Shown: positions 6,166 to 56,748 of the stretch, one piece after another
Layout of the letters: each line of letters opens with the position of its first letter
How positions within the stretch are numbered: position 1 is the first letter of the stretch
NCBI GenBank assembly: GCA_965644295.1
Contig: CBFFRP010000285.1
Coordinates: forward strand, 62,001 to 126,000
From: Paraphysomonas bandaiensis
Taxonomy: Eukaryota > Protista > Chrysophyceae
Length of the DNA stretch: 64,000 bases
Reading direction: 5' to 3'
Position numbers and translations under genes: made by a program
Notes under the pieces: generated by a model
What the model was told of the DNA's origin: nothing
Seen by the model: the letters and a program-made list of their open reading frames with translations, nothing else
Database searches by the model: none

Positions 6166-6472
6166 TATTAATTTACGCTTTTAGTTAGTGCAATATTGAC
6201 TGATTGATATTATAGGAGATATAGTAAGTTTATGATGTTGTAGCCCTGTGAGTTAGGAACCACGTCATTCACCAACATCAACATTCTGTTCTACAAATCA
6301 TATCTTTAACAGCTACTATATTTTCAGTTTCTTTGTATACTTGTAATAGCTACTCCTATACTGTAGTCATGTATATTCTGTATTTCATTGCTACATAGAA
6401 TACAGGATAACTACTAGCGATTGACTTTACCAAACTTCAAGTACGCACGTAGGAGTTGGTTGTAGTTCAATA
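6166..6472 (-). repeat. 3' LTR of copia element
   Basis: Direct repeat of 11038-11344; TATT...AATA termini. Confidence 0.95.
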
Positions 6473-6520
6473 CTCCCACTCAATGAACATATCAGAATAT
6501 ACTGTGATGAGCAAGTCTAC

Positions 6521-9500
6521 TTAGTGCGATACCATAGTGTGCACATGCTGATAGTGCAGCTTCTCGGACAAGGCTTTAGTCATCACGTCTGCTGTCATCT
6601 CTGCCGTTGGCACATGATTCAGCCTGACGATACAGCCTCCCACTTGCTCTCGAATCCAATGATACTTGATCCGAATATGCTTGGAACGTTTATGATTTAC
6701 CGGGTTCTGAGCTAGATCAATCGCACTCTTGCTGTCCATATTCAAGATTGTTGGAGACGCATTCTTACTGAGCTCAAATCCACGAATTCCGAGCTCTGTC
6801 ATCACCCCTCGTATCCATACAATCTCCTGAATTGCAGCATATGCAGCCATATATTCAGCTTCCATAGTCGACGTAGCCACTGTTGGCTGCAGTCTGGACT
6901 GCCATGCAATTGGAGCACCCCACAGATATACGATATACCCTGTAGTGGATCTGCATGTATCCAGATCTCCGGCCCAATCTGCATCAGAGTACACACATAG
7001 AGGGTCTTCATCTGTGAAATTAGGAAATATGATACCTTGATCAACTGTATTTTCTAAATACAATAAAGTATGCAGAGCAGCTTGACATGCAGCGTACGTG
7101 GGTCTTGTGGTGAACCGGGAGAGAAGATTTACTGTATATGCCATGTCTGGTCTAGTATGCACTGCCAAATACATTAAGGCACCAATAACAGATTGATAGG
7201 GAAATGCATCAACGTATTCTCTCTGTTTTCGAGTTTCTTCCTCTTTTGCATCCTTGGACAACTTTAGGCCAGGTGGTAGAGGTGTGGTTGCCTTGCACCG
7301 TCTCTTCTTTTCTGACAACAAGTGATTGAATCTGGCCACAACATCTTTAGCATATGCAGACTGATGTAACTTAATCTGGCCATTATGACGCTCAATGGTA
7401 AGACCTAAATAATGCTTAAGGTCCCCCATATCTTGCATGGCATATTGAGTCTTAAAGGCGCTGATGACTTCTTCAATATGACGGCTGTCAGAGCTGAGCA
7501 CAATGATATCATCTACATACACAAGTATCATATGTAGGTTATCATCAGTACCCTTGAGTACAAATAAACATGGGTCAAGAACACATTGTTTATACCCCAT
7601 CGCCTTTATACTGTCCTTCAGCATTGAATGCCAATTTCGAGGCGCTTGTTTTAGGCCATACAAACTCTTCAGAATCTTCAAACAACAGCCTTGTGGAATA
7701 TCTATTCCTGCAGGTGGAGACATAAACACGTCTTCGTCCAGATCTGCATACGGAAATGCCGTTTCTACATCGAGTTGACGGAGTTGCAGATTGTATCGCA
7801 GAGCCAGTGCTAGTGCTAGCCTAAATGATACACCTTTAGCTACTGGGGAGAATGTCTCATTATAGTCGACTCCTTGTTCTTGAGTAAACCCTTTCGCCAC
7901 AAGTCGAACTTTGAACTTCTTAATTTTTCCAAGATGGTCGCGCTTTACTTTAAAGACCAATTTAGATTTTATGATTTTTCGGTGTTTCGGCCTTCGGACA
8001 ATCTTCCAGCATGTCCTTCGTTCAAGCTTGTGCACCTCCTTCCTGGTAGCTTCAATCCAGTATGTTCTCTGTGGAGTCTTCTTTGCTTCTGCCAGCGTCT
8101 GTGGCTCTTTAATTGTGCTGTTGGAGGAATCAAGAAACAATGAGACATCGCCGAGGACACCAACGTTAACAATGTGCCGTTTTTTTCGAGGTCGTTTTTC
8201 AGTTCTGGGATTTCGATCTGCCCCACCTGTTGAAGATGCGCCCCGATTTGAGCGGTCAGGAGTCCTCTGTTCATTGTCACTGTCATTACAAGTCTGATCC
8301 AACTCATTTCGCAAACTATTAAACTTGTCGGTCTGACACTTTGTAGAGTGAGTCATCTTTACTACATCTTTGATATGAATTGGAGTTTGCTCCTCGGTAG
8401 TATTTCCTTTCATATCTAATCTCCTATATGCAACAATGACTCCTCTTCTCTCTATCACTCTGGTGGTAACATAACACAGGTGTCCATCAAGATGTCTGAG
8501 GCCCACCAGGTACTGATAGTCATTTACACTCTCTGCTGTTTCTGAGGTGTCGATTTGTAGATTATCTATTTCGTCGAAATACTCCTGTGAACGCTCTGGA
8601 ATTGACTCATCAAACTGTGCATTGACTGCAACAATAATAGCATTCAGGTCTGGAATATATATTTGGTGTCCAACAGGTTGTTGACATTGTCCCATATAGT
8701 ATCCAGGTTTTCCCTTTTCTTTCCACTCTTTGCGGCGCTGCTCCTTCGGCACAATAGCCCATGCCTTGCAGCCCCAGATCTTCAAGTCACTCACATCTGG
8801 TGCGGTTCCAGTAATATACTCAAAAGGTGAGATGTATCCTTTCGTTGTCTTCGTAGGTAACCTGTTGATCAGATATACAGCATGCAAGACTGCTTTGAAC
8901 CAAAATACTGATGGCATGCCACTATCGAGCAATATAGCAAGGGCCATCTCCTTCACTGTACGATTAGTGCGTTCCGATAGCGAATTCATTTCGGGTGTGT
9001 CACGTGGAGTCCAAGTAACCTGTACAGTCCTTGTGCTGGTGGTTTCACGTAAGTACTGCCTGACATGTTGCCCTACTAGTTCTCCTGCGCCATCTGCATG
9101 ATATCGTCGTAGTTGCAATCCTTCTTTGACAAGTTGGGTCTCTACCATGTCCTTCATACACTTTAACACTTCACTCCCAGTCTTGTTTTTCAACCCATAA
9201 GCCCATACATGTTTTGCATCACTGTGCTTGAATAGTAACACATGTTTGTAGCCTTCCATCGATGGCGTGTTTAGGACTTCCATCGTATCTGCACTGAGCA
9301 CCCCTCTCTCCTTTGGGTTGTTGTCTAAGTTCATCAACTGGCGTGGAGTCCTGAAGTTCTTTCTCGTGAGTTTCGATCGCATGCAGGTATTACATTTGCA
9401 TATCGTTTTTTTGTGTTTTTTTCTGAAATATTTCTTGTCCAGATTTATTCCATCAACTAGGCCTCGGCGGTCGGACTCAGTCAGTTTATCATAGTTGACA

Positions 9501-11038
9501 TGGCCAAGTCTTTTGTGCCATAGAATTCGCTGGTCATCAAACCCCTGCTCCTCAAGTGCTGCTGAGGATTCTTCTCCAAGCTGAAGTAAGTCTTCGAGTC
9601 GAACTGGATATAATCCATTAACACTTCTCTGTCTAATGAGTGTCTTGTTCGTAGTCTTATTTCGAATGACGACTTCATCATTATCGAACGTCACAACACA
9701 ACCCCTATCTGTGATGCTCTTCATATCTACGAGGTTCTTACTTGCTTCAGGTGCGTAGTACACCTTTTTAAAGCTTCCTACATCGCCAACACTGTGTATT
9801 GACAGTTTACCTTTGTTCGCTGTGGACATCTGCCTATCAGCGCGCTGAAGGTTGGTCATGTGGTTTTTGGAGGTAAGGATCATCTTGTTGCACCCGCTGT
9901 CTAAATAAATAACATCTGACATGCTCTGTGCTAGATTCACCTCTTCTTCCACACATATCATCGATTCGTATCCCGCTTCATCTTCTGAATCATGTACAGA
10001 CACTCGCGGTTTCTTCTTGTTCTTGTAGGGTGCCGTTTCCCTTCTAGAGTCTCGCCCCCGTTTAGAACTGACCACTGCAGCTTTAGCAGTCTTCAAGTGG
10101 AAGCAGTCTTTAGTCTGATGGCCTGGGATGTCACATATCTCACACACAGGTAGCTTTGTTTTGTTATCACCCCTGTTTCTGTGATCTCTATCTTTTCTCT
10201 GTGATCTTGTCCCCTTCATCCTCTTTATGACATGCTCTGGAGTCTTGCACTCCCTAGCAAAGTGGCCAAGTTTCTTGCACTTATTGCATCTGCCCTTTCT
10301 CTTGTGCTCTTTCCATTTACTGTCATCCATTGCTTGATTGACACTGTCTTCCCCTGAATTTTGCAACGCATGCTTGCCGAATGATGTGTTTTCATACCCT
10401 TTGATTAGGCTGCTTGCTCTTGCGTATGTCACATCGTTTGCTGTATACAGGCTGTGTGCTAGTTGGGAATATCTCTTGTCTGTGAGACCTTCCTTTAGTC
10501 GAGTGAGCTTGTCGTCTTCCGTGACTTCACGACCTAGATTCTCGAGAATCTTGGCCTGGGCTTCAACGCTGTCGACGAACTCTGCTCCTGACTGACTTGA
10601 GGTAATCTTCATTGAATTGAACTTTGTGACCTCTGCCTGTACTGTATTCTTTTCAACATTGAGAAATCTCTCTTCCAGTGCCTGTAGTAACCCTTTTGCT
10701 GTACTTCCTTCGTAGAGAGCCGCTGTTGTGCCTGCTTTTGGGTGAGCATTGCACACTTCCATCAGGAAGGAGTACGCGGTCTCGTTCCGGGTGTTCCAGA
10801 GTTTCTTCGCTTTGCGTAGTCGCTTCTTCTGTGCATCAGTCATATGAGCTCCCGCTGGGACTGTAGAGTCTAGATCATGAATGTGCCTTGGTTTATCCTT
10901 TGAGAGGACAAGATGAGCTCGATTGTGTCTCATGAGGAATGAGGTGAAGAACTTCTTGAATTTCTTGAAGTTCAGTTCCTCGAAGGGAGGTACCTTTGAG
11001 CCTGAGGCGACATTCGTGAAATTTCCATCCGCTGCCAT
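6521..11038 (-). CDS. Copia Gag-Pol polyprotein (Gag, 2 CCHC knuckles, protease, integrase, RT, RNase H), 1505 aa
   Basis: CNKCKKLGHFAREC and CEICDIPGHQTKDC; YLDSGC protease; LWHKRLGH..CNTC; D..DGAGE..ERTNR integrase; KVRLVAKGFTQ, LYGLKQA, VYVDD RT; YSDADWAG RNase H; PR-IN-RT-RH order. Confidence 0.97.
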   Translation of the reverse strand: MAADGNFTNVASGSKVPPFEELNFKKFKKFFTSFLMRHNRAHLVLSKDKPRHIHDLDSTVPAGAHMTDAQKKRLRKAKKLWNTRNETAYSFLMEVCNAHPKAGTTAALYEGSTAKGLLQALEERFLNVEKNTVQAEVTKFNSMKITSSQSGAEFVDSVEAQAKILENLGREVTEDDKLTRLKEGLTDKRYSQLAHSLYTANDVTYARASSLIKGYENTSFGKHALQNSGEDSVNQAMDDSKWKEHKRKGRCNKCKKLGHFARECKTPEHVIKRMKGTRSQRKDRDHRNRGDNKTKLPVCEICDIPGHQTKDCFHLKTAKAAVVSSKRGRDSRRETAPYKNKKKPRVSVHDSEDEAGYESMICVEEEVNLAQSMSDVIYLDSGCNKMILTSKNHMTNLQRADRQMSTANKGKLSIHSVGDVGSFKKVYYAPEASKNLVDMKSITDRGCVVTFDNDEVVIRNKTTNKTLIRQRSVNGLYPVRLEDLLQLGEESSAALEEQGFDDQRILWHKRLGHVNYDKLTESDRRGLVDGINLDKKYFRKKHKKTICKCNTCMRSKLTRKNFRTPRQLMNLDNNPKERGVLSADTMEVLNTPSMEGYKHVLLFKHSDAKHVWAYGLKNKTGSEVLKCMKDMVETQLVKEGLQLRRYHADGAGELVGQHVRQYLRETTSTRTVQVTWTPRDTPEMNSLSERTNRTVKEMALAILLDSGMPSVFWFKAVLHAVYLINRLPTKTTKGYISPFEYITGTAPDVSDLKIWGCKAWAIVPKEQRRKEWKEKGKPGYYMGQCQQPVGHQIYIPDLNAIIVAVNAQFDESIPERSQEYFDEIDNLQIDTSETAESVNDYQYLVGLRHLDGHLCYVTTRVIERRGVIVAYRRLDMKGNTTEEQTPIHIKDVVKMTHSTKCQTDKFNSLRNELDQTCNDSDNEQRTPDRSNRGASSTGGADRNPRTEKRPRKKRHIVNVGVLGDVSLFLDSSNSTIKEPQTLAEAKKTPQRTYWIEATRKEVHKLERRTCWKIVRRPKHRKIIKSKLVFKVKRDHLGKIKKFKVRLVAKGFTQEQGVDYNETFSPVAKGVSFRLALALALRYNLQLRQLDVETAFPYADLDEDVFMSPPAGIDIPQGCCLKILKSLYGLKQAPRNWHSMLKDSIKAMGYKQCVLDPCLFVLKGTDDNLHMILVYVDDIIVLSSDSRHIEEVISAFKTQYAMQDMGDLKHYLGLTIERHNGQIKLHQSAYAKDVVARFNHLLSEKKRRCKATTPLPPGLKLSKDAKEEETRKQREYVDAFPYQSVIGALMYLAVHTRPDMAYTVNLLSRFTTRPTYAACQAALHTLLYLENTVDQGIIFPNFTDEDPLCVYSDADWAGDLDTCRSTTGYIVYLWGAPIAWQSRLQPTVATSTMEAEYMAAYAAIQEIVWIRGVMTELGIRGFELSKNASPTILNMDSKSAIDLAQNPVNHKRSKHIRIKYHWIREQVGGCIVRLNHVPTAEMTADVMTKALSEKLHYQHVHTMVSH

Positions 11039-11344
11039 ATTAATTTACGCTTTTAGTTAGTGCAATATTGACTGATTGATATTATAGGAGATATAGTAAG
11101 TTTATGATGTTGTAGCCCTGTGAGTTAGGAACCACGTCATTCACCAACATCAACATTCTGTTCTACAAATCATATCTTTAACAGCTACTATATTTTCAGT
11201 TTCTTTGTATACTTGTAATAGCTACTCCTATACTGTAGTCATGTATATTCTGTATTTCATTGCTACATAGAATACAGGATAACTACTAGCGATTGACTTT
11301 ACCAAACTTCAAGTACGCACGTAGGAGTTGGTTGTAGTTCAATA
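11038..11344 (-). repeat. 5' LTR of copia element
   Basis: Direct repeat of 6166-6472, followed directly by TGGCAGCGG (putative PBS). Confidence 0.95.
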
Positions 11345-12096
11345 CACAGAGTCCATGTCGACAACACATACTAATATATACAGTAAAGTATGGATTCGAG
11401 ACTAATAATAAAGTACTCGTGCTAGTTTTTATTACCATTTGCTCCTGTCTAGTTACCGATGATAAGAAATAATGGTAGTGTATAGTATAGCCAACCCAAT
11501 TAAGGTACATTTTACAGTTGATTTTTATAGCTAACGTGAATTGATTTTTATAGCTAACGCCTGTTGCTAATAGGAAGACATAGACTACTCCCTTTCGCCT
11601 ATTTTCACTACTCATATATTAATAGAATTACATGAACACCAACTGTTGCTGGATTCTATTTATGCTACTGTATATCATAAAGTGACAGTCTGCTTTAACG
11701 TAAAGGGTTACGAGCTGTTCATGTCACAAAACATTAAATAAAAGTACACACGCATCCTCACTGCTACCTTGTCGTTAAGTTTTTTATAAGTAATCATTTT
11801 CTTTCTTTCTTGAAGTTCAGAGTATTGTATACTATGAGCATGCATGTTAGGCTTTATATTTCAGACCAGTTACAAAAGCAGCCATCAGGCAATAGGCCTC
11901 ATATGACTTACGGTCTTGCAATGAAGCCACTGAAGACATGACGTGAATGTCCAGTTTCATGAAATCAACGACCCATGTAGTTCCGTTTCATGCATATTCC
12001 CAAATTCCGTTTCAACGACCCATGAGGATACGGCGATTGAAATCAAGATTAATGCGATTTCGTGGACAACTTGTGTCCCAATAACAAACAGAGTCA

Positions 12097-12221
12097 ATAC
12101 ATACATACATACATACATACATACATACATACATACATACATACATACATACATACATACATACATACATACATACATACATACATACATACATACATAC
12201 ATACATACATACATACATACA

Positions 12222-12253
<32 letters not shown>

Positions 12254-12647
12254 CATACATACATACATACATACATACATACATACATACATACATACAT
12301 ACATACATACATACATACATACATACATACATACATACATACATACATACATACATACATACATACATACATACATACATACATACATACATACATACAT
12401 ACATACATACATACATACATACATACATACATACATACATACATACATACATACATACATACATACATACATACGTACATACATACATACATACATACAT
12501 ACATACATACATACATACGTACATACATACATACATACATACATACATACGTACATACATACATACATACATACATACGTACATACATACATACATACAT
12601 ACATACATACATACATACATACATACATACATACATACATACATACA
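12097..12647. repeat. (TACA)n microsatellite, ~550 bp
   Basis: Near-pure array with a few TACG variants; ~110 bp upstream of WW gene ATG. Confidence 0.98.
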
Positions 12648-12757
12648 CGCATGTAGCATGTAGGGTTATATGTTATGTTAATGTGCCTATACTGTCATTC
12701 ATATAGTTGAACCTCTCTACAAGACCATACATTAATTTCATTATCTCATTGGTCAGT

Positions 12758-13365
12758 ATGTCTCTGCGTGGAATGTGGACGAAGCATTATACGTTAGAAG
12801 GGTCAGCTTTCTATTACAATGCATCTCTAAGTAAATCAAGATGGACCCCACCTGTTGATGGTGTTGTTCATGAAGCAGAGAAATTGAAACCACCTACAGA
12901 TGATAGTGTGGCTCCTGAAGCAGGTGAAGTATCGTTACAAGAAGTTTCTAGCAGTGAAACTACTGAATTACCCCCTGAACAAACCAAACCTGTCGATCCT
13001 AGTGAAACTACAAGGTTTATATGACACAACACAGAGATTAATGTCCTCTGAAACTTTTTGTTTAGCAATAGTGATAAAAATGTAGTTAATAGTAGTAAGA
13101 AAAGAGGGTGAGTGGTATAGTCGTGCCTGACAATGTCTAATTGATACGACGCTATAGCCCTGATCCTGCTGTAGAGGATATGACTGATAAATTACTTCAA
13201 GCAGTGGCAAGTCAACAACAACAGATAAAATCAAAGAGGTCGAAAGGCGATTCAAAATCTGTTGGCTCTAACTCTCAGAAATCTGATTACCAGAAACTGG
13301 TGAATACATACGAAGCTATGGCAGGGGAAAAAGCTGAGGAAGGGTCGAAGTGGCTCGTTAGATAA
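12758..13365 (+). CDS. Small WW-domain protein (multi-exon)
   Basis: MSLRGMWTKHYTLEGSAFYYNASLSKSRWTPP (WW pattern); GT-AG introns; last exon ends EEGSKWLVR*. Confidence 0.75.
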
Positions 13366-18049: not shown

Positions 18050-19419
18050 TTAGTTGAGTAATGTATGTGTCATGAGGTTTAATAAGCAGTCGGATGAAGA
18101 GGCAGATAGATGCAAGAGGAAGTGGTCACTGGACATCAGTCTCCTCCACAGCATACTACAGGCAGAGAGTACCTATAATTAATTGTACCTATGTACGTGT
18201 TTGTACCGGTGTACATGTACTTGAATATTTCAAGAAGCCATCACTGTATATGTATATCAGTACAGACACATAATAAACCTGCTGCGTACCTCCATAAATA
18301 CACTATGAACAACTCACACACATATGTACTTCTTTACATACACTCCTCCATATACAGCAGTACATCTCCTCACAACATACCATCACATCAAACTCCGAGT
18401 CCACTTAACTAAACCACATTCATTCCATACCATACCATACCATTCATATATAAAACATGTCATCCTCATCAAATGAAACAAGTGATAAGTCTAATTTTCT
18501 TAATGAAGTAAGTAGTTATACTCCAACAGTCCCTCATGCTGTTATACAGTATGAATTATCGAAATGTGGGATAAATATAGAGGACCCTAAAATACTCCAT
18601 CTTATATCTATTGCAACTGATAGATTTCTTGCTGAAATTATATATGAAACAAAACAATTATCAATAATGAGAGCAAAAAATATGAAAGGAAAATCAAAGC
18701 GTAAAGCAGAGGAGATTACGGACACTATGCAGTTAGAAGATCTCAGTAGAAGTTTAAAAAAACGGAGAGTATCATTACGTACACGTACCACTGGTATGCT
18801 CAAATAATGCTAGCATGTTGTGAAGTTTACATATGGTGGAACGGTATGTTGATTGGATCGTGGTGGAGTCCTGTAGTTCTCTTGCCGTGTATTACGTGTA
18901 ATATCTAGAGCAAGTACCTTGCCTTATTAATTGATATAAAATTTGATTGTTTTGTACTTGTAATACATCTACGGTGGTACGCAGGGTGGCCTGTACCTGT
19001 AGAGCTTTCCATGTCTTTCCCATTATATTTGAGATTTTATTAAACTTTAGACTACGACAACACCACAAGCAACTACATGTTTGTTTATCTTAGCCATGTG
19101 TCGAATTTCTTACTGTCACAATGGTTTTTGAAACAAATTGTTTGGTATGAACACATCACCGCCGTTGGTCTCGTGGAAGAAAACGATATCTTGTAGATGC
19201 TGCTTATCAATATTTCAATTAATTGAAATTGGGACATTCTAAAATTGGATAGTTGAATATTTAATCCATCTAAAATTTCTACAAGTAATTGCAATAGTTG
19301 AGAATTAATTGATGCGTTAAGAATACCATCAGTTAGATCGTGGCAAGTTATAATTGGAGTAAGGATATTAGTTATTACACAAAACCCTCAACAAAGTCGG
19401 ACTCGCACCTTTTCGTGGT
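18050..19419 (+). repeat. Segmental duplication copy 1 (TAF10 locus)
   Basis: Colinear similarity to 22406-23791, near-identical over 18724-19419 vs 23139-23791. Confidence 0.9.
18457..18807 (+). CDS. TAF10: TFIID subunit TAF10
   Basis: YTPTVPHAVIQYELSKCG..DPKILHLISIATDRFLAEII..TMQLEDLSRSL histone-fold pattern. Confidence 0.88.
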   Translation: MSSSSNETSDKSNFLNEVSSYTPTVPHAVIQYELSKCGINIEDPKILHLISIATDRFLAEIIYETKQLSIMRAKNMKGKSKRKAEEITDTMQLEDLSRSLKKRRVSLRTRTTGMLK

Positions 19420-19564
19420 ATTCCGTAGAATAAGTACCAGGGATATTTCTCCGAGAAAGTAACGTGAGCCGCATATATAGTCAGCATATAGCAGATTGTA
19501 TTCTGGCCACTGATTGCCAAATGCTTGTGTGGTAAAAGGGACAGTAATTTGTGTGTTGATCAAC

Positions 19565-20884: not shown

Positions 20885-22172
20885 ATGGTAAGTGATATTA
20901 CATATAGACATTCTCACTCGACAATAATACTCTTGCCATATCTATCATATTATATAGATATCAATACCACGAATCATACAGCGCTTTACCAACCTCCCAA
21001 AACAGTCCAAGAACACCATGAACGAATGTATTTCCGAGGTTTTAGACTCAACAAATCAAGAAAATCGGAGAATATGGTGGAAAAGTTACGTGGAATCAAA
21101 CCAGTACGATCTTAAGAACTTTTTTCATGAGTGGTTGATTTACATTCCTGTCCCACCTTCATCTCAGCATACAACTGGAAATCCTGACTCTCCTGGATAT
21201 TATATAGAGAAGTGGGACTGGCTTGCAAACACTGAGAGCGGCTTAAAATTGACAGCACATGATTGTGATTTCCGTGCCTGGTTCGTTGATTTTCTTAACG
21301 CACATGGTGAGTATGTCAAGACTTCGGTTGATCTTCTTCCTCCATCTGGACAAACCGCTATTGAATCGTGGTACACCTTTCCTGGCACTGAGGCACACCC
21401 ATTTGATATCAATGATTACATCAAGCCACCGGGTGGGTTTGCGTCGTTCAATGATTTTTTTCTGCGTAAGGTGAAAAGTGGATTGCGTCCCGTGGACAGC
21501 TCAGATATTGTATCTCCTTCTGATGGTGGCATATTCTTCTTGATTGACCCACGTCAAGAAAACCAACGCAATCTGTATGATGGCGTCGAACTTCCTGGGA
21601 AATACAATGACCAGTTTACCATCACAGATGGATTTCCCTACTGGGAACATTTTGTGGGCGGTGCTGTGCTTGATATCTTGCTATGGTTTACAGATTACCA
21701 TCACTTTTTCGCCCCAGTCACCGGGACTGTAGTATGTATGGCGGACTATGCAGGCTCTTACAATTATGATTTCAACAATTTTAATGCCAAGGTCCCAACA
21801 GCTGCTGCTCCGCCCCAAGAAAGCGACCGAGTTGGGTGGTACCTCAAATTTGCGAAACACCGACGATTTGTGTGGATCATTCAGACGCCTACAATGGGTC
21901 TCGTGGCCATGTCTGCTATTGGTTTTTGGGGCGTAGGATCGATTGTCACACGTGATAATGGGGACGGCACATGGATGACCGGTGCTCGAGCAGTAATGCC
22001 CGGGGATAAGGTGAAAAAGGGAGATTATCTGGGTCATTTTGGCTACGGTGGCTCGTCGATAGTTCTTGCGTTTGAGAAAAATCGAAACATTGATTTTCTG
22101 GTTGGATCTTCACCAGATCATCCAAGGCTGATTAAAGCGGGCGGCTCAATTGGAAATTATGATACTCGTTAA
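20885..22172 (+). CDS. Phosphatidylserine decarboxylase-family (pyruvoyl-dependent) enzyme
   Basis: FNDFFLRKVKSGLRP, SPSDG, DYHHFFAPVTG, HFGYGGSSIVL; main exon 20958-22172; probable ATG-only first exon (ATG|GTAAGT 20885-20887, intron 20888-20957). Confidence 0.85.
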
Positions 22173-22405: not shown

Positions 22406-23791
22406 TTAGTTGAGTGATGTATATGTAATTAGCTTTAATAAGCAGTAGTATATGTGGTCACTGAACATCAGTCTCCTCCAAAGTATATACTACAGGTTCT
22501 ACAGCTGTACCTGTCAACCTGTACTTGAATATAGCAAAAGGTATTAGGATTCATCTTAACATAAGGTAGTATATGTAAAATATAATGTTCAATGAAATAT
22601 ATCATGAACTGAATTAATGATTATATTGAATTGAAGATACTTGATCGTCATCATAATGATCGTCATTTCCGTTACACCTCTAACTATTCTACAATGATCG
22701 CTGTTCTACATTATTATGCACTTTCTCTACATTATTGTGTTATTCACTTTACATTCAAATAATCACAACATTAGAAGTCGTCATTGTATATGTACCACTT
22801 TTATCGATAGTTGTCTCTGTTGTACATGAAATGTAAATACAGTGTACATCAGTACACTTAAACTACCTGCTGTGTACCTCAATAAATATGTTCCTTGACC
22901 TATCCCACCTACTTCAACTCTACACACAGATGTACTTCTTCATATACACTCCTCCATATACTACAGTACATCCCCTCACAACATACCAGCACATCAAGTC
23001 CGAGTTCTCTCTCAACTAAACCACAGTTATTCCATACCATACCATACCATTCATATATGAAGCTTGTCATATCCTCATCAATCCTCATCAAATGAAGCAA
23101 GTGATAAGTCTAATTTTCTTAACGAACTAAGTAGTAATACTATGCAGTTAGAAGATCTCAGTAGAAGTTTAAAAAAACGGAGAGTATCATTACGTACACG
23201 TACCGCGGGTATGCTAAAAAAATGCTAGCATGTTGTGAAGTTTACATATGGTAAAACGGTATGTTGATTGGATCGTGGTGGAGTCCTGTAGTTCTCTTGC
23301 CGTGTATTACGTGTAATATCTAGAGCAAGTATCTTGCCCTTATTAATTAACAGGTCTGTGTCTGTAGAGCTTTCCATGACTTTCCCATTATATTTGAGAT
23401 TTTATTAAACTTTAGACTACGACAACACCATAAACAGCTACATGTTTGTTTATCTTAGCCACGCGTCAAATTTCTTACTGTCGAAGTGGTTTTTGAAACA
23501 AATTGTTTGATATGAACACATCACCGCCGTTGGTCTCGTGGAAGAAAACGATATCTTGTAGATGCTGCTTATCAATATTTCAATTAATTGAAATTGGGAC
23601 ATTCTAAAATTGGATAGTTGAATATTTAATCCATCTAAAATTTCTACAAGTAATTGCAATAGTTGAGAATTAATTGATGCGTTAGGAATACCATCAGTTA
23701 GATCGTGGCAAGTGGCAAGTTATAATTGGAGTAAGGATATTAGTTATTACACAAAACCCTCAACAAAGTCGGACTCGCATCTTTTCGTGGT
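22406..23791 (+). repeat. Segmental duplication copy 2 (TAF10 locus)
   Basis: Copy of 18050-19419 with an LTR-like insert (~22542-22770) and TAF10 internal deletion. Confidence 0.9.
23064..23222 (+). pseudogene. TAF10: TAF10 pseudogene
   Basis: ATG changed to TTG, 204-bp deletion (18523-18726 equivalent) at ACT microhomology, stop codon lost. Confidence 0.85.
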
Positions 23792-24140
23792 GTTCTGGGA
23801 TTATATTAGATATTATAATAGATGTACATTGTATGCAATAATGCAAGGTAAACTCGAGAGTAATGTCCAATTTAAACACAGCACATTATAACATGTCATG
23901 ATAGGTGATTAATTTCGAGCAACGTAGTATGTAGAAGTATTATTAAAGCACTTTCTATGTAAGAGATACTTCACACTGATATATACAGCTTTCTTGGGTT
24001 GTGCGGTATAATCTACAAGAGCACTTCATGCCTAAGTAGGTAGCACACAGTAAAATTAGAAACGAATGTATAATCTTATTTACATCAAAACAAGTAGACA
24101 TCGAACACAATTCGTATGGACACAGGCACAAGACATGATA

Positions 24141-30162: not shown

Positions 30163-30289
30163 ATACACTGTAGGAATTCCTAGTTAGATGGCGTTTACTT
30201 TATACATTACATACAATGACAGTTCTCGAGTTCAGAGTGAAGATATGGAATGATGAGGAGATACTACGTATATTCATGCACTGTAGGTT

Positions 30290-30291
<2 letters not shown>

Positions 30292-30321
<30 letters not shown>

Positions 30322-30668
30322 TGTATGTATGTATGTATGTATGTATGTATGTATGTATGTATGTATGTATGTATGTATGTATGTATGTATGTATGTATGT
30401 ATGTATGTATGTATGTATGTATGTATGTATGTATGTATGTATGTATGTATGTATGTATGTATGTATGTATGTATGTATGTATGTATGTATGTATGTATGT
30501 ATGTATGTATGTATGTATGTATGTATGTATGTATGTATGTATGCATGTATGTATGTATGTATGTATGTATGTATGTATGTATGTATGTATGTATGTATGT
30601 ATGTATGTATGTATGTATGTATGTATGTATGTATGTATGTATGTATGTATGCATGTATGTATGTATGT
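30292..30668. repeat. (TATG)n microsatellite
   Basis: Near-pure array between divergent start codons (30162 -, 30751 +). Confidence 0.98.
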
Positions 30669-30750
30669 TTAAGTTAATCTTGTCCACACCATACTATTAA
30701 CTCTTAGAACTCACCCGTCACTGTGACGGAACAAGTGTATCGTCAAACAA

Positions 30751-33154: not shown

Positions 33155-33694
33155 CCATTGGTACAATGTAATAATAATTTTTTGTAGTGTATCATGTGCA
33201 TTAGCAGTAATAGCCTATTTGCCGTTTATCTGAAATTTTGTGTTTGGTTTATCCTTTTCAGTGTAGCCACATAGATACTGATATTTTAAGTATACGGTAT
33301 TCAGTATTCAGTATATCAACTCGATTAGTACATGACAGCATGTAAGCGTTACATGTAATGTTCAACAGTCAACAGCACTACGTAAATACCTATATAATTA
33401 AGTTAGTTACACAGACAGCTAGTTAGCTGTATTCTTAGTATTGACACTACTGTATACATAATACATATCATCTGCTATTTCCAAAGTAAACATACATTTC
33501 ACAAATATCATATTTATTCTCAGCGCTTTTTATTTTTTAGAGTCAATGGCTTAATAACTTTTGTAATGAATAGATATCTCAATGAGAAATGACACTTAAC
33601 TTTTGTCTTTCTCTGAAACTTTGAAGAATTTACTGATACACGTACTTGGTAGGATTGAAGGATTGAATATAGAGTGTGTATCTACATAAGGTAT

Positions 33695-33875
33695 ATTGAA
33701 GGTCTTTTTATTTAGCAATAGGCGTTAAAAACTCGTTCCCCCGATACAGTGGCTAGTTGAATGCTAGATCTACTAGTTAGACCTCTACCCATAACTAATC
33801 AGCACAAATTCTATTATCCTACTATTTAGCGCTACAGAAGCTGCTTGTGCGTCGTTGCAAGCACCAAGGTTCGCA
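33695..33875 (-). mobile_element. 3'-end remnant of the non-LTR retrotransposon family
   Basis: Reverse complement aligns with 56150-56321. Confidence 0.8.
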
Positions 33876-37543: not shown

Positions 37544-37651
37544 CCACAGGGCCTCTTCATAGTTATGTAAATATATTTGGAGTATCGTCGTTAGAATTTA
37601 GAATATCTCTAATTTAAACATAAAATGGTTATTGTTTTGTATTTAGTTGAC

Positions 37652-37776
37652 TAGTAGTGAATGTCTTATTATTAGCAATAGGCGTTAAGAGTCAGTGCTT
37701 AACTCTGATAGCCTACTATGTAACGCTACGAAAGCTGCTTGTGCTTCACCGTAAGCACCAAAGTGCGACCACTTTC
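37652..37776 (-). mobile_element. 3'-end remnant / SINE-like relative of the non-LTR family
   Basis: Reverse complement matches 56143-56325 with a shorter middle; ends GACATTCACTACTA. Confidence 0.75.
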
Positions 37777-38247
37777 GCTCTATTACTCAAAGCAAACGCA
37801 GTGAGAAAGCAGAATGTTGATATACCTGGCATCTGCTGACTTTAGGATTTTTGAGTCCTTAAGGTGAACAGCCCGGATGCTTGACATCAGCAGGCAGCCC
37901 AATACCCCAGACGCCCTTGAGGTGGTCACATTCCCATTGCCTGTTTATTCGTTAGGGCCCAAAGACGTCTACAAAAGTGACATATCTTAATAGTGTTCCT
38001 TATATCACACAAGCATTAGGCTATGTGTGGACAGAAAATTATCTGCTGACTATACATGTAGAAAATATCTCCGGTATTTATTATTTATCCCCCAGAACAC
38101 CACGAAAAGGTGTAAGTCCGACTTTGTTATGGGCAATAATTGCTAATTGACATTTAATAGAATACAATTAAGTGCTACGTAACCCTGTAGAGTAGGTCAC
38201 TTTTGAGTGCTCAGTGTTAGAATACGTATATTTTTCTAAGATAGTAC

Positions 38248-51188: not shown

Positions 51189-52513
51189 CAGGGATAGGGA
51201 ACAATATATTGCAATACTATTGTTAGGTAGCGTTCCATCAATAGTATTGATGGATTTTTTAAACCGGCCCTACAATACTATTGCAATATATTGCAATATA
51301 TTGTACAATATATTGCAATATATTAGTATGACTAATCAGTAAGTAAACACATCCGTAGTTTTCATTTTTAGTACTTGCCATATTTTATAAGGTCTAAGGT
51401 CACTTGATAATCAAACCCACTACTCTTAACTAATTAAAAGTTTCCTCATACTCATCCTCTGAGCCATCATCGGTGACATCATCATCACCATATTCATTCA
51501 ATATTGATTGAAATATGCTTGCATCCGGCCACAACTGTCGGTTAGCTTTCAGAAACAACAGCATATTAAGTGTAGTAGGATGCATACGTTTGCGCAACAC
51601 TGATATAATCAGTTTTGCTGCGCTGAACAGGCGTTCACACGTATTGGAAGTACATACTACATGACTCGTGCACCTGTACTTAGATATTTCAACTTTTCGC
51701 TTCTTAAGTTTTTGAGCTGATTGAAGAATTTTTTCCGCATAGCCAACTTCAGCTTCATCATCCTCTGTATTGTTGCAATAATCACTGTCTGAACGGAGAT
51801 ATATTCTAACAGCATCTTTCTCAGATCTTGTCAAGTCCAATTCTTCGCCTGCTTGGAGTTTTGCAATTCCATTCTCGAAATTCGGATCATTAAGTCTGAA
51901 GGCTGCAGAACAAAAGCATCCATGGGACCATTGGTGCAGACAGCCCGTAAATACCTCTTCAATGTCTCCTCCCACACATCATGAGAGAAAGTGTGATCCT
52001 TTAGATTGTTGTATCCATTCCGAATATTCTGTTGTCGTTTACGTCCGCAGATTTTACACTCGTGTTTGTTCGGGACACCTTCGACCGGACTCCAAAAACA
52101 GCGGTAAATGTCCCTACTCTTGTATGCACTCATCATTCAGTTGTCTCTTCTTGTCACTATAGGATATATATACTATATTAAGAGAAGTACTGTACATACA
52201 TGTGGAGAGGTGTAGAGTGCTGTTTGAGCTGGCGATACATAAAAAATAGAAAATAACATCAAAAATAGGCTTTTTTTCTTATTTTCCGGATATTTGTATA
52301 CAGAGGCGTATATTTTGCACCATACAGTTGAGGATCTTCTCTTATATGACTATCATAATATTGATTGCAATATATTGCAATAGTATTGTGAGCTCTATTA
52401 ACAGAAACACTATTGATGGAATATTTGACCAGTCCACCAATCAATATATTTTACAATATATTGCAATATATTGTACAATATATTGCAATACAATATATTG
52501 TTCCCTATCCCTG
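51189..52513 (-). mobile_element. hAT DNA transposon, internally deleted (non-autonomous)
   Basis: Perfect 23-bp TIR CAGGGATAGGGAACAATATATTG; 8-bp TSD GATTCTAT; CAATATATTG subterminal repeats. Confidence 0.93.
51430..52136 (-). pseudogene. hAT transposase remnant (BED finger and C-terminal dimerization domain, core deleted)
   Basis: CKICG..NLKDHTFSH in one frame; TSNTCERLFSAAK..MHPTTLNMLLFLKANR in another. Confidence 0.85.
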
Positions 52514-53028: not shown

Positions 53029-53207
53029 ACTACGATCTACATTATCATGGTCGACCACAGTCATTGAGTATACGAGTATGCAACATGCAACAGTACGTCA
53101 GCACATTAAAAGTTATTCTTGTGACTTGTGAATATGAATAATCCTTAGAATTATGATGTAGCCGACAAAATATAATTTTAGTCGTAAATTTCAAGCCTGT
53201 GTATTTC
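53029..53207 (+). repeat. 179-bp direct repeat, left copy (putative TSD)
   Basis: Identical by eye to 56322-56500. Confidence 0.95.
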
Positions 53208-56084
53208 AACGATGTAGTTGACTGGTTTGGCAACTTAGATGCCGGCGGTCTAACATTTCCCTGGACACCATTCATGGCAAACAACATAGAGCCACGTTCT
53301 CTCCTTGACCTCCTGTCCGCAGACGGCCACTTCATTGCACTATTCAGTCTGGGTTTCGAAGCCGAAAGGGGTATCACCCAAGGGGGCACAGAATCCACAT
53401 GCGCCTGGGTGGCACTCTACGACATCCTTCTCACGTGGCTGGACATTGAACTGTCAACAACGAGTCCAACGTTACCAACTATTCAACTCACGACTCCGAC
53501 TACCGGCGAAATAAAGATCTCCTTCGCGGATGATCTTAACACAATAGCTAAATCCATACACGCTGCCCAACTCATTGCCCAACAAATATCTGCGTTCTGC
53601 GTACTTTCGGGAATGGAGCTCTCTATCCCCAAAGTAGTTTGCACAGTGTTTCCGATCCTACAAGATTCCAACAAGTCCTCCGACCCCATTGGCTACATCA
53701 TTCTCTACGACTGGTCGTGGCGTCCACACCCAGTCCCTATCCAAACATCACTAGAGTCGATACATTACCTCGGAGCAGACCTTCCTCTCACAATCACAGA
53801 CAAGGCCTCCCATGATTGGTGTCTAAAATACCTGAAAGTCGTGACCACACACCTAGGGATTAAACAGGCCTCAGCCGGCTGTAAAGTCATGGTTATCGAG
53901 ACCCAAATCATACCGACTTTGCTCTATAGAGCCACCAAAGCTTCATGGCCGCTACACTGGTACAGAGAAATTGACGCTGCTTGCGCAACCCTCTACAGAA
54001 AGGCCCTCAGTCTAGGCCCTGGATACCCCACGGAACTGATCTACCTCTCACTCAAGCACAACGGATTAGGTATGAAACGTTTCTCAGACTCGGCGCAGGA
54101 GCAAAAATGGGGATCTCTACAGCGCGCAATAACCCTCGGGGGAGAAGCAGGTCAAGCAGCACATTTTCTACTCACTCAGACAACAGAGCCACAGCCCCAA
54201 TACCACCACTATGTTCTCAGCCTCAGGGAATGGGGAACGGAATTGGGCCTTACCCTTCAGGAACCTGAGCCCCCCGAACCACAGGATGAACACATGCTGA
54301 CCAACCTAAAACAAGAACTCGGCCTTAATAGTGTCCAACCAGATACTTTCAAGGCTATCTTCACAGATGGATCATACACAGCCAGTGCGCTCTCCACTCG
54401 TCGCCTCACTCATGTCAATCCGCGAACCCGATGGACACACCGAGGAGGTGCAGCGGTCGTCTACTTACCCCCAGAAAATGCCTGGGAAGATGGTACAACC
54501 ACAATACTACGACTAGATACACCCTTTCGTGACGTGCCCGGTTTGGACTCATACGCATACGAACTCATAGGCACAGCCATGGGGCTTATACTCTCAACAC
54601 GTATTCCCGAACACATACGAAGCCACACAGACTGTCAGGCAGTGTGCACCCGCACTGAGGAAGCACTCTCCACAAGACGCAGAGCTCTCGGTCACCGTGC
54701 AAAAGGGGTACTACTCGAAAGCATCGCAGCCAGCAGAGATTGCAAACGACAGGTGACCTGGGTGAGGTCCCATCCCGAACGACGTACCACAGATGAAACG
54801 GAGTGGACGTTTGAGGACAAGGGCATCTATATTGCGGACGCAGTTGCGGGTGAAGACTGGCATGAAGTCGATCGCATCCTTGGAAAAAATAACTACACTG
54901 TCTGCACAATTGCGATTGACAGTGCCATCGAACGCTTACTAACTGCTGGATTATGGCACTGGCGTATGCACAGTACAAGACGGCCATACTACTCTAGCCC
55001 ACTCCTTACTAATTTCCAGGATCTCTGCGACCTAAGGACACTTGAGAACTACACTTCAACCAGAGATCAACGCTACGGACACAATCCTGATCGAGCGCCT
55101 GGCTACTGGACCAATAGCGGAGTACACCTCCCGCGCAAACTAGCTCAAGCGGATGGCAGTGCATCCAAAGACAAACTCAGCTCAAATCTACGCCAAAGAA
55201 TACTCAACACGGCACTGACATGGGACAAATCTTTCTGCATAGGGAGGAACCGGGCCAAAACCAAACAGGGACTTGACCTGACCAAAGCCGCATGCTCTGA
55301 CTGCGGGTTTCGACTAGATTCCCTAAAACATATGTGCCTCGACTGCACACATGAATCCATCACCCAAATAAGGGAAACTGCATTTCAATCGCATAAAAAT
55401 GTGCTCCACGAAATACAGAGAACTCAGACCTTACCCAACTGGATCACATCTGCACTACGGAGACTCTCCAGCAGAGCCTGGAATCCCTCCATCCCACAGG
55501 TCGAGAGATACTGGACTGGAACCATCACAGCAGCCCAACTGGAAACGGTCTTCGAAGATGCCATACACAACCACCTGACGGCACACAGTCTACGGAACCT
55601 AGAAACAGCGGTTATTAATCTCCTGCAACCGCTTTACACTGCAGCGAAGCTTATGCTACAGGATCGCGGTTGTCGCTATATCACCATGTCCAAAAGGCCG
55701 CCCAGACTACTCCCGAGACCCCGTCCGAAACGCAGTCAGTCAAGACAACGTCCGAGAGTCCTTCGACTACTAGGGGTCCAACGAAGACCCCCCACAGCGT
55801 CCCCGACTCCAGACACACGTGCACACCTCACAGGTCCTACCCGACAGAGCACTGGACTGCCCAGACCTCCACAACGCCGACGGCTTCGACAACTCTATCT
55901 ACACCCGCGGCCCCACAGGAGCACAGTAACACAGACTACAAACCCAACTCCTCCTCCCAACAATCCCCACCACTCTCAACCCACACATCTGGAACTAGGT
56001 GCACTCAGGACCCTAATCCAGAACGCTGAGCCCCCTCCAACACCAATGGAGACCCATCCCAAAGGGAGACCCCCAGATCAATAG
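53208..56084 (+). CDS. ORF2 fragment: non-LTR RT C-half, RNase H, CCHC Zn finger, Arg/Pro-rich tail
   Basis: GITQGG, SFADD, HYLG, NGLG; IFTDGS..AYELIG..TDCQ..WVRSH..IADAVA; CSDC..KHMCLDC. The ORF-track start (53199) lies inside the flanking repeat. Confidence 0.88.
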   Translation, partial: NDVVDWFGNLDAGGLTFPWTPFMANNIEPRSLLDLLSADGHFIALFSLGFEAERGITQGGTESTCAWVALYDILLTWLDIELSTTSPTLPTIQLTTPTTGEIKISFADDLNTIAKSIHAAQLIAQQISAFCVLSGMELSIPKVVCTVFPILQDSNKSSDPIGYIILYDWSWRPHPVPIQTSLESIHYLGADLPLTITDKASHDWCLKYLKVVTTHLGIKQASAGCKVMVIETQIIPTLLYRATKASWPLHWYREIDAACATLYRKALSLGPGYPTELIYLSLKHNGLGMKRFSDSAQEQKWGSLQRAITLGGEAGQAAHFLLTQTTEPQPQYHHYVLSLREWGTELGLTLQEPEPPEPQDEHMLTNLKQELGLNSVQPDTFKAIFTDGSYTASALSTRRLTHVNPRTRWTHRGGAAVVYLPPENAWEDGTTTILRLDTPFRDVPGLDSYAYELIGTAMGLILSTRIPEHIRSHTDCQAVCTRTEEALSTRRRALGHRAKGVLLESIAASRDCKRQVTWVRSHPERRTTDETEWTFEDKGIYIADAVAGEDWHEVDRILGKNNYTVCTIAIDSAIERLLTAGLWHWRMHSTRRPYYSSPLLTNFQDLCDLRTLENYTSTRDQRYGHNPDRAPGYWTNSGVHLPRKLAQADGSASKDKLSSNLRQRILNTALTWDKSFCIGRNRAKTKQGLDLTKAACSDCGFRLDSLKHMCLDCTHESITQIRETAFQSHKNVLHEIQRTQTLPNWITSALRRLSSRAWNPSIPQVERYWTGTITAAQLETVFEDAIHNHLTAHSLRNLETAVINLLQPLYTAAKLMLQDRGCRYITMSKRPPRLLPRPRPKRSQSRQRPRVLRLLGVQRRPPTASPTPDTRAHLTGPTRQSTGLPRPPQRRRLRQLYLHPRPHRSTVTQTTNPTPPPNNPHHSQPTHLELGALRTLIQNAEPPPTPMETHPKGRPPDQ

Positions 56085-56321
56085 CGCCGGTGAGTCCACG
56101 GACACACGATAAAGGCGAATTTCATATCACACAAAAGAACGGAAGTGGTTGCACCTTGGTGCTTGCGGCGACGCACAAGCAGCTTTCGTAGCGTTAAATA
56201 GTAGGATAAAAGAGTTTGTATTGATTAGTTACGGGTAGTGGTCTAACTAGTATGACTAGCATTCTTCTAGCCACTAATTGATGCAAGGTCTCAACGCCTA
56301 TTGCTAAATAATCAGACATTC
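53208..56321 (+). mobile_element. 5'-truncated non-LTR retrotransposon (RT, RNase H, CCHC finger)
   Basis: Starts mid-RT; ~240-bp 3' UTR ending GACATTCACTA; 3' UTR homologs at 33695 and 37652. Confidence 0.9.
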
Positions 56322-56500
56322 ACTACGATCTACATTATCATGGTCGACCACAGTCATTGAGTATACGAGTATGCAACATGCAACAGTACGTCAGCACATT
56401 AAAAGTTATTCTTGTGACTTGTGAATATGAATAATCCTTAGAATTATGATGTAGCCGACAAAATATAATTTTAGTCGTAAATTTCAAGCCTGTGTATTTC
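56322..56500 (+). repeat. 179-bp direct repeat, right copy (putative TSD)
   Basis: Identical by eye to 53029-53207. Confidence 0.95.
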
Positions 56501-56748
56501 CTAATTCATAAGAATTTAACTGCTACAAATCCGCAACGGCCAATGTTAAATTACCATGTAGCTTGTGCCCATAACATACTTTTTCTATTTGAGAATCAAA
56601 CTCTATCAATAATCTTGACAACTATGCATGCAAAGGAAGAATCATTATAATCTTAAGAAATTAGGTAAACGATTCAAACTAAATTGAGCTAAGTAATTTT
56701 TCCAATTAAGACAATTATTCTCGCATTTCTGCCGATGATATCGAAAAA

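Follow-up and report, generated by a model that had tools for sequence, protein, structure and literature searches.

A 179-bp target-site duplication around a 5'-truncated LINE in Paraphysomonas bandaiensis as a probable product of distant second-strand breakage

The way in which long interspersed nuclear elements (LINEs) cut the second target strand and prime synthesis on it is still poorly understood, and long target-site duplications (TSDs) are among the few natural footprints that these steps leave behind. Here we describe what we interpret as such a footprint in the chrysophyte Paraphysomonas bandaiensis, on a stretch of 64,000 nucleotides (contig C285:62001-126000 of a 62.5-Mb assembly, hereafter the window), where a 5'-truncated copy of a high-copy LINE family lies between two identical 179-mers.

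Long TSDs have been described in several LINEs, L1 among them. In HeLa cells, TSDs of more than 100 bp are found in fewer than 10% of L1 events, and when nucleotide excision repair is deficient L1 TSDs measure anything between 5 bp and 5.3 kb (median 1495 bp), for which the authors propose a 'distal unrelated nick' (PMC5223499, Servant et al. 2017). A passage of PMC2912911 that summarises Gilbert et al. associates extremely long TSDs with 5'-truncated L1 insertions, and where tandem duplications of 1-10 kb accompany L1, they have been termed large TSDs and attributed to break-induced replication (BIR; bioRxiv 10.1101/2024.12.14.628481). With ZfL2-2, a zebrafish LINE of the L2 clade, one of 25 insertions in DT40 cells carried a TSD of 1228 bp (PMC2666801, Suzuki et al. 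2009). In mutation-accumulation lines of Chlamydomonas reinhardtii, more than half of the insertions of Dualen-4b_cRei lie between duplications whose median length is 900 bp; these duplications, of hundreds to thousands of bp, were read as giant TSDs, and the two endonucleases of the element, one apurinic/apyrimidinic-type (APE) and one restriction-like (RLE), were suggested to be responsible (PMC9977147, Lopez-Cortegano et al. 2023). In the R9 element of bdelloid rotifers, a 126-bp TSD at one site in the ribosomal DNA is the rule, as Gladyshev and Arkhipova 2009 are cited in the relevant passage of PMC9977147. A first, sequence-only reading of the window had named R9 as the noted long-TSD exception; the R9 TSD does exceed 100 bp, but the account was incomplete, as long TSDs are documented for L1, ZfL2-2 and Dualen as well.

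The window case belongs to this known class of LINE insertions with a 'large TSD', to which it adds an example from a new lineage. In our reading, to which we give a probability of about 0.8, it represents a genuine and very recent insertion of a 5'-truncated APE-type LINE through target-primed reverse transcription (TPRT), whose flanking duplication arose from a distant, non-programmed break in the top strand. The two 179-mers, at 53029-53207 and 56322-56500, are 100% identical and offset by 3293 bp, as found by a repeat finder and by self-BLAST and confirmed by direct reading of both junctions. A search of the whole assembly placed the 179-mer at two positions only, both at the insertion locus, and it is therefore single-copy target DNA outside any repeat family. 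Since the first five nucleotides of the 179-mer, ACTAC, are common to the element tail and the target, the duplication proper measures 174-179 bp. These results bear out two statements of the sequence-only reading, namely that identical 179-mers adjoin the truncation point and the 3' tail, and that they are target DNA and not a long terminal repeat (LTR), the 179-mer having no further copy in the genome and standing at none of 30 other 3' ends of the family. An LTR or other terminal repeat was rejected on this uniqueness and on the absence of the 179-mer from other copies; 5' or 3' transduction was also rejected, as the copy is truncated in the middle of the reverse transcriptase (RT) and the 179-mer has no source locus. 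The parts of the insertion are as follows, positions being those of the window.

53029-53207, no strand: left (5') target copy, 179 nt, 34% GC, identical to 56322-56500
53199-56084, plus strand: remnant of an open reading frame (ORF), open over 961 codons, from the ORF list and its translation
53208-53208, plus strand: extra nucleotide A at the 5' junction, where the reference has G and the target continues with C
53209-56321, plus strand: 5'-truncated LINE body of 3113 bp, equivalent to 6446-9559 in L033, the full-length reference copy, and 98-100% identical to 40 or more other copies
56085-56321, plus strand: 3' untranslated region, ending in ...AATCAGACATTC and conserved in all copies
56322-56326, plus strand: ACTAC microhomology, the element tail (ACTACT in most copies) being the same as the start of the target
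56322-56500, no strand: right (3') target copy, identical to 53029-53207

At the 5' junction, the left target copy is followed by the one extra A at 53208 and then by family sequence, which sets in at 53209 with reference position 6446. Neither target nor element supplies a template for this A, the alignments of all other copies begin only at 53209, and no microhomology is present. Truncation falls at about residue 2055 of the reference protein, inside its RVT_1 match at 1951-2244. At 97-100% identity, the 3114 bp between the repeats match 40 or more other genomic places, which have the 3' end in common and varied 5' starts. Compared with 19 other copies, the window copy shows no private substitutions in 3113 bp except for the extra A, and this, taken with the perfect TSD, supports a very recent insertion.

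The 961-codon remnant encodes the C-terminal half of the RT with its FADD box, an RNase H-like region (TDGS...), a Cys/His motif, a conserved C-terminal region and a Pro/Arg-rich tail. The named Atlas clusters closest to it are RNase_H, and the closest clusters without a name come from diatoms; a homologue of 44% identity aligns with it and has the C-terminal region in common. The RVT_1 match of the window copy is weak and partial. Because the start codon, the endonuclease and the N-terminal part of the RT are all missing, the window copy was dead on arrival.

At the other end of the element, all 30 of the other readable 3' ends run ...CATTC, then ACTACT or a close variant, and then into unrelated DNA, with ACTAT, ACCAC and ACCGG as minority variants after CATTC. 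The left target copy of the window also opens with ACTAC, there after unrelated DNA. The target would thus have offered five nucleotides complementary to the 3' end of the RNA, and these were probably used for priming. Three further statements of the sequence-only reading hold up against these observations: that the insertion is very recent, that its ORF is uninterrupted, and that the tail overlaps the start of the target, the overlap being the five nucleotides of ACTAC and the tail recurring at the 30 other 3' ends.

The family is large, with a 26-mer from its 3' end matching 266 places genome-wide (at least 266 3' ends). Its full-length reference copy (L033:671-9721, minus strand, contig C440) is about 9.36 kb long and holds a single ORF of 3016 aa, in which Pfam recognises SET (1087-1191), Exo_endo_phos (1257-1494, E 2.4e-9) and RVT_1 (1951-2244, E 1.1e-14), so that the SET domain sits directly upstream of the APE endonuclease and the RT. 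The best matches to solved structures are to the RT of L1 ORF2p (E 3e-8), and only three homologues were found among 5.8 billion proteins. The copies have a common 3' end, variable 5' truncation and TSDs of variable length, and they have neither LTRs nor terminal inverted repeats. Judged by these domains and ends, the family is an active APE-type non-LTR retrotransposon, or LINE, and the window copy had been read as a non-LTR retrotransposon at the outset; RT, an APE upstream of it and LINE end structure are all present in the family.

We surveyed TSDs among loci L001-L053 by reading the junctions of copies with both flanks available and scoring them with an exact-match script. Eighteen copies were scored automatically, with TSDs of 9, 10, 11, 11, 12 (five copies), 13 (five copies), 14, 14, 16 and 18 bp and a median of 12.5 bp; the full-length C440 copy, whose TSD of 12-13 bp was read by eye, brings the number at 9-18 bp to 19. 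TSDs start with a weak TA, in part through overlap with the tail. Six loci without a clear TSD (L027, L034, L036, L037, L045 and L053) were left unscored, as were L029 and L031, which are interrupted by other inserts, and L035, with a possible 9-bp TSD and about 27 nt of filler, was not counted. No long TSD was found at the full-length-type copies L004-L007, where 781 bp of 3' flank have no second copy on the same contig. Long TSDs occur in two of the 25 copies sampled regardless of their TSD (8%), or in three of 26 with the window copy included; the 95% confidence interval for their frequency, taken from the near-identical 2/26, is 1-26%.

The first of the two further cases, L049 (C43:55513-57239), is a 783-bp copy in which an exact 473-bp repeat adjoins both the tail and the 5' junction. 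Target and element have seven nucleotides (TGGTAAC) in common at the 5' junction, the tail is aberrant, with ACCGG in place of ACTAC, and the assembly search found the 473-mer, at 100% identity, at its two places only. The second, L026 (C143:107094-110016, minus strand), is a 2.9-kb copy. Within flanks of 1500 bp, a repeat of 1355 bp with 99.93% identity was visible, with gaps of 146 and 145 bp between it and the ends of the element, and these offsets therefore predicted a repeat of about 1640 bp that adjoins both ends and runs past the flanks. Both halves of the prediction were tested. The 146 bp adjoining the 5' end have their sole other copy at C143:105448-105593, and for the 140 bp that follow the ACTAC tail the sole 100% copy is at C143:111517-111656, in each case at the predicted coordinates. 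The element thus lies within C143:105448-111656 with a TSD of about 1640 bp, the two copies of which differ at one position. All three long-TSD loci are well inside their contigs, and no unit is shared by the lengths 179, 473 and 1640 bp.

Large TSDs have been defined for L1 as duplications of more than 100 bp of single-copy target that adjoin both junctions, and the window (174-179 bp), L049 (473 bp) and L026 (about 1640 bp) all have this structure. They also appear, as in L1, as a minority beside a short mode (2/25, with a short median of 12.5 bp). The likeness to L1 extends to a canonical first nick and 3' junction, to TSDs from more than 100 bp up to kilobases adjoining both ends of mostly 5'-truncated copies, to a frequency of about 8% compared with fewer than 10% in repair-proficient cells, and to filler or microhomology at the 5' junctions. 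Unlike the L1 events recorded in cell-culture assays, these insertions are natural and fixed, and their host is a protist. The family differs from L1 also in its ACTACT tail without poly(A), in a normal TSD of about 12 bp as against about 15 bp, and in its single giant ORF, which combines SET, APE and RT with an RNase H-like region.

Dualen-4b resembles the present family as a LINE of a unicellular eukaryote with duplications of hundreds to thousands of bp, but its long TSDs follow more than half of the insertions, compared with about 8% here. A second, restriction-like endonuclease was not detectable in our family, where Pfam gave no match of any kind in the region after the RNase H at E-values up to 10 and the AlphaFold2 model, with a mean pLDDT of 42, was of too low quality for a verdict. 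ZfL2-2 offers the same combination of mostly short TSDs and a rare outlier on the kilobase scale, although it belongs to a different LINE clade and was observed in an experimental system with a heterologous host. R9 is likewise a non-LTR element with a TSD above 100 bp. In contrast to its uniform long TSD at one target site, the copies studied here occupy dispersed sites with flanks that differ at every copy, most of their TSDs are 9-18 bp, and the long TSD is an exception of variable length.

Some copies of the family are of interest apart from their long TSDs. In L042, L044, L047 and L050, the first 1.2-1.7 kb or so of the element are joined straight to its last 350-470 bp or so; these internally deleted copies have normal TSDs of 11-13 bp and were probably mobilised as non-autonomous copies. 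L029 (294-1500) and L031 (156-1500) are broken by inserts of about 1.2-1.3 kb, and the duplication of 13 and 5 bp of the element at the ends of the inserts points to secondary insertions of other elements. In the window itself, two retroposons on the minus strand, at 33694-33870 and 37650-38050, have 3' tails 82-93% similar to the LINE tail, and one of them ends in ...CATTCACTACT. Rather than family copies, they are probably LINE-dependent non-coding elements; the sequence-only reading had mistaken positions 33695 and 37652 for family 3' ends, and what lies there are the tails of these other, 82-93% related elements.

From the microhomology between tail and target and the anatomy of the junctions we infer that the window copy was inserted by TPRT, and the following course of events would account for it. 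The bottom strand would have been nicked between 53028 and 53029, and the ACTAC of the target would have paired with the 3' end of the RNA, ...ACUACU, as in canonical priming. A nearby second-strand cut would then have failed or been pre-empted, and a distant top-strand 3' end, at a break presumably located between 56500 and 56501, would have been used instead, so that the end completing the insertion would lie 174-179 bp downstream as compared with the family's usual 12 bp or so. This end may have come from an unrelated distal nick, or it may have been associated with repair or replication, as proposed for long L1 TSDs. Strand-displacement or break-induced synthesis would have copied the intervening target onto both sides of the element, and the truncated cDNA would have been end-joined to the upstream DNA, leaving one untemplated A. 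In the minority events as a group, the top-strand end completing the insertion lies 0.2-1.6 kb downstream and the 3' junction is canonical, with tail microhomology; the 5' junctions, with a filler base or microhomology, are by their sequence typical of end joining.

Two other explanations of the top-strand break were set aside. A nick of the twin-priming type would call for a 3' end complementary to the RNA tail, which ...TATTTC is not. A nick-site consensus, with its weak TA at the start and weak T-rich end, leaves the distant break unexplained. A 10-mer, TAATTCATAA, occurs once in the window, at 56502-56511, just after the right target copy, and the C440 copy also contains it in its 12-bp TSD; as a nick-linked motif it was set down to chance, its position relative to the nicks being different in the two copies.

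Several points weigh against a TPRT insertion completed at a distant break. The structures are those of the assembled sequence, and of at least 266 copies the survey took in about 26. A weak T-rich preference is all that the second-nick sites show, too little to tell where the distant top-strand end came from. No empty allele was found in the 62.5-Mb assembly, and a gapped pattern spanning the insertion site had no match in metagenome contigs.

The closest rival arrives at the same product by another route, in which a TPRT intermediate would become a one-ended break, for example at a replication fork, and BIR or template switching from the reciprocal end would re-copy 0.2-1.6 kb of target with no second nick. 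Such a route has been proposed for the 1-10 kb tandem duplications associated with L1 (bioRxiv 10.1101/2024.12.14.628481). It would also dispense with a 1.6-kb duplex between two nicks, which would not melt unaided, and the 5' junctions, with a 1-nt filler in the window copy and the 7-nt microhomology of L049, resemble those of end joining or microhomology-mediated end joining. However, the sequence does not set this route apart from strand-displacement synthesis after a distal nick, and we regard it as a variant of the best explanation, possible but somewhat doubtful in this form.

That the assembler or polisher made the second 179-mer, and that the real TSD is a normal one of about 12 bp, is unlikely. 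The assembly does hold duplicated loci or haplotigs, since one insertion, along with its 3' flank, appears on two contigs, at L011 (C434:136564-139677) and L012 (C562:3437-6550). An artefact would nevertheless have had to arise at three independent mid-contig loci with the same exact architecture, in which the repeat ends precisely at the canonical tail and at a typical 5' junction, and the pair of about 1640 bp differs at one position, as expected of two real copies.

Still less probable is the proposal of the sequence-only reading that the two nicks lay one nucleosome repeat apart, a model in which the endonuclease or access to chromatin would set the spacing and about 180 bp would be the characteristic TSD of the family. 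Although 179 bp is near the typical nucleosome repeat length, and the SET domain of the full-length element hints at an interaction with chromatin, the family stagger is about 12 bp, with 19 copies at 9-18 bp, and the other verified long TSDs measure 473 and about 1640 bp. The check put forward with that proposal was a peak of TSD lengths at 170-190 bp, and none is present in the sampled copies. We therefore rejected nucleosome phasing as a property of the family, and the distant break appears to have been non-programmed and not a measured, chromatin-phased second cut. Finally, a pre-existing tandem duplication whose junction the element hit exactly, or a flank that was duplicated after the insertion, is logically conceivable without an empty allele and has no specific support, and it is most improbable, as it would require an exact coincidence of boundaries at three loci with unrelated repeats of 179, 473 and 1640 bp and no additional TSD of about 12 bp is present.

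The TSD lengths form a two-part pattern, a sharp mode at about 12 bp and a tail of 0.2-1.6 kb, as in L1 cell-culture assays, and our data add to these a non-model lineage, with a young, high-copy protist LINE whose insertions are fixed. The pattern supports a view of long TSDs as by-products of TPRT in general, confined neither to human cells in culture nor to elements with two endonucleases. Each long-TSD event duplicates up to 1.6 kb of host DNA. Only tentatively, and with more doubt than confidence, we suggest that this lineage of SET-domain LINEs couples the breaks in the first and second strands unusually loosely in nature, and that about one insertion in ten, those of dependent non-coding elements included, duplicates 0.04-1.6 kb of target. 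If true, retrotransposition would steadily give rise to small tandem segmental duplications in this protist, and its genome would be a natural system in which to ask how the second strand is broken, whether by host repair nicks or replication or by the element's own nuclease.

Other elements and repeats lie elsewhere in the window. An element of about 1.3 kb (51189-52513), some 500 bp upstream of where the LINE inserted, is bounded by inverted repeats of about 32-45 nt rich in CAATATATTG units and is probably a non-autonomous DNA transposon. On the minus strand, 6166-11345 is a Copia-type LTR retrotransposon with gag-pre-integrase and RVT_2 in an ORF of 1505 aa, and it is very young, since its 308-bp LTRs are 100% identical. 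Direct repeats of 94-96% identity, about 4.4 kb apart (18724-19423 and 23139-23795), surround a phosphatidylserine decarboxylase gene (21018-22172), and long arrays of 8-bp tandem repeats occupy 11944-13200 and 30178-30700.

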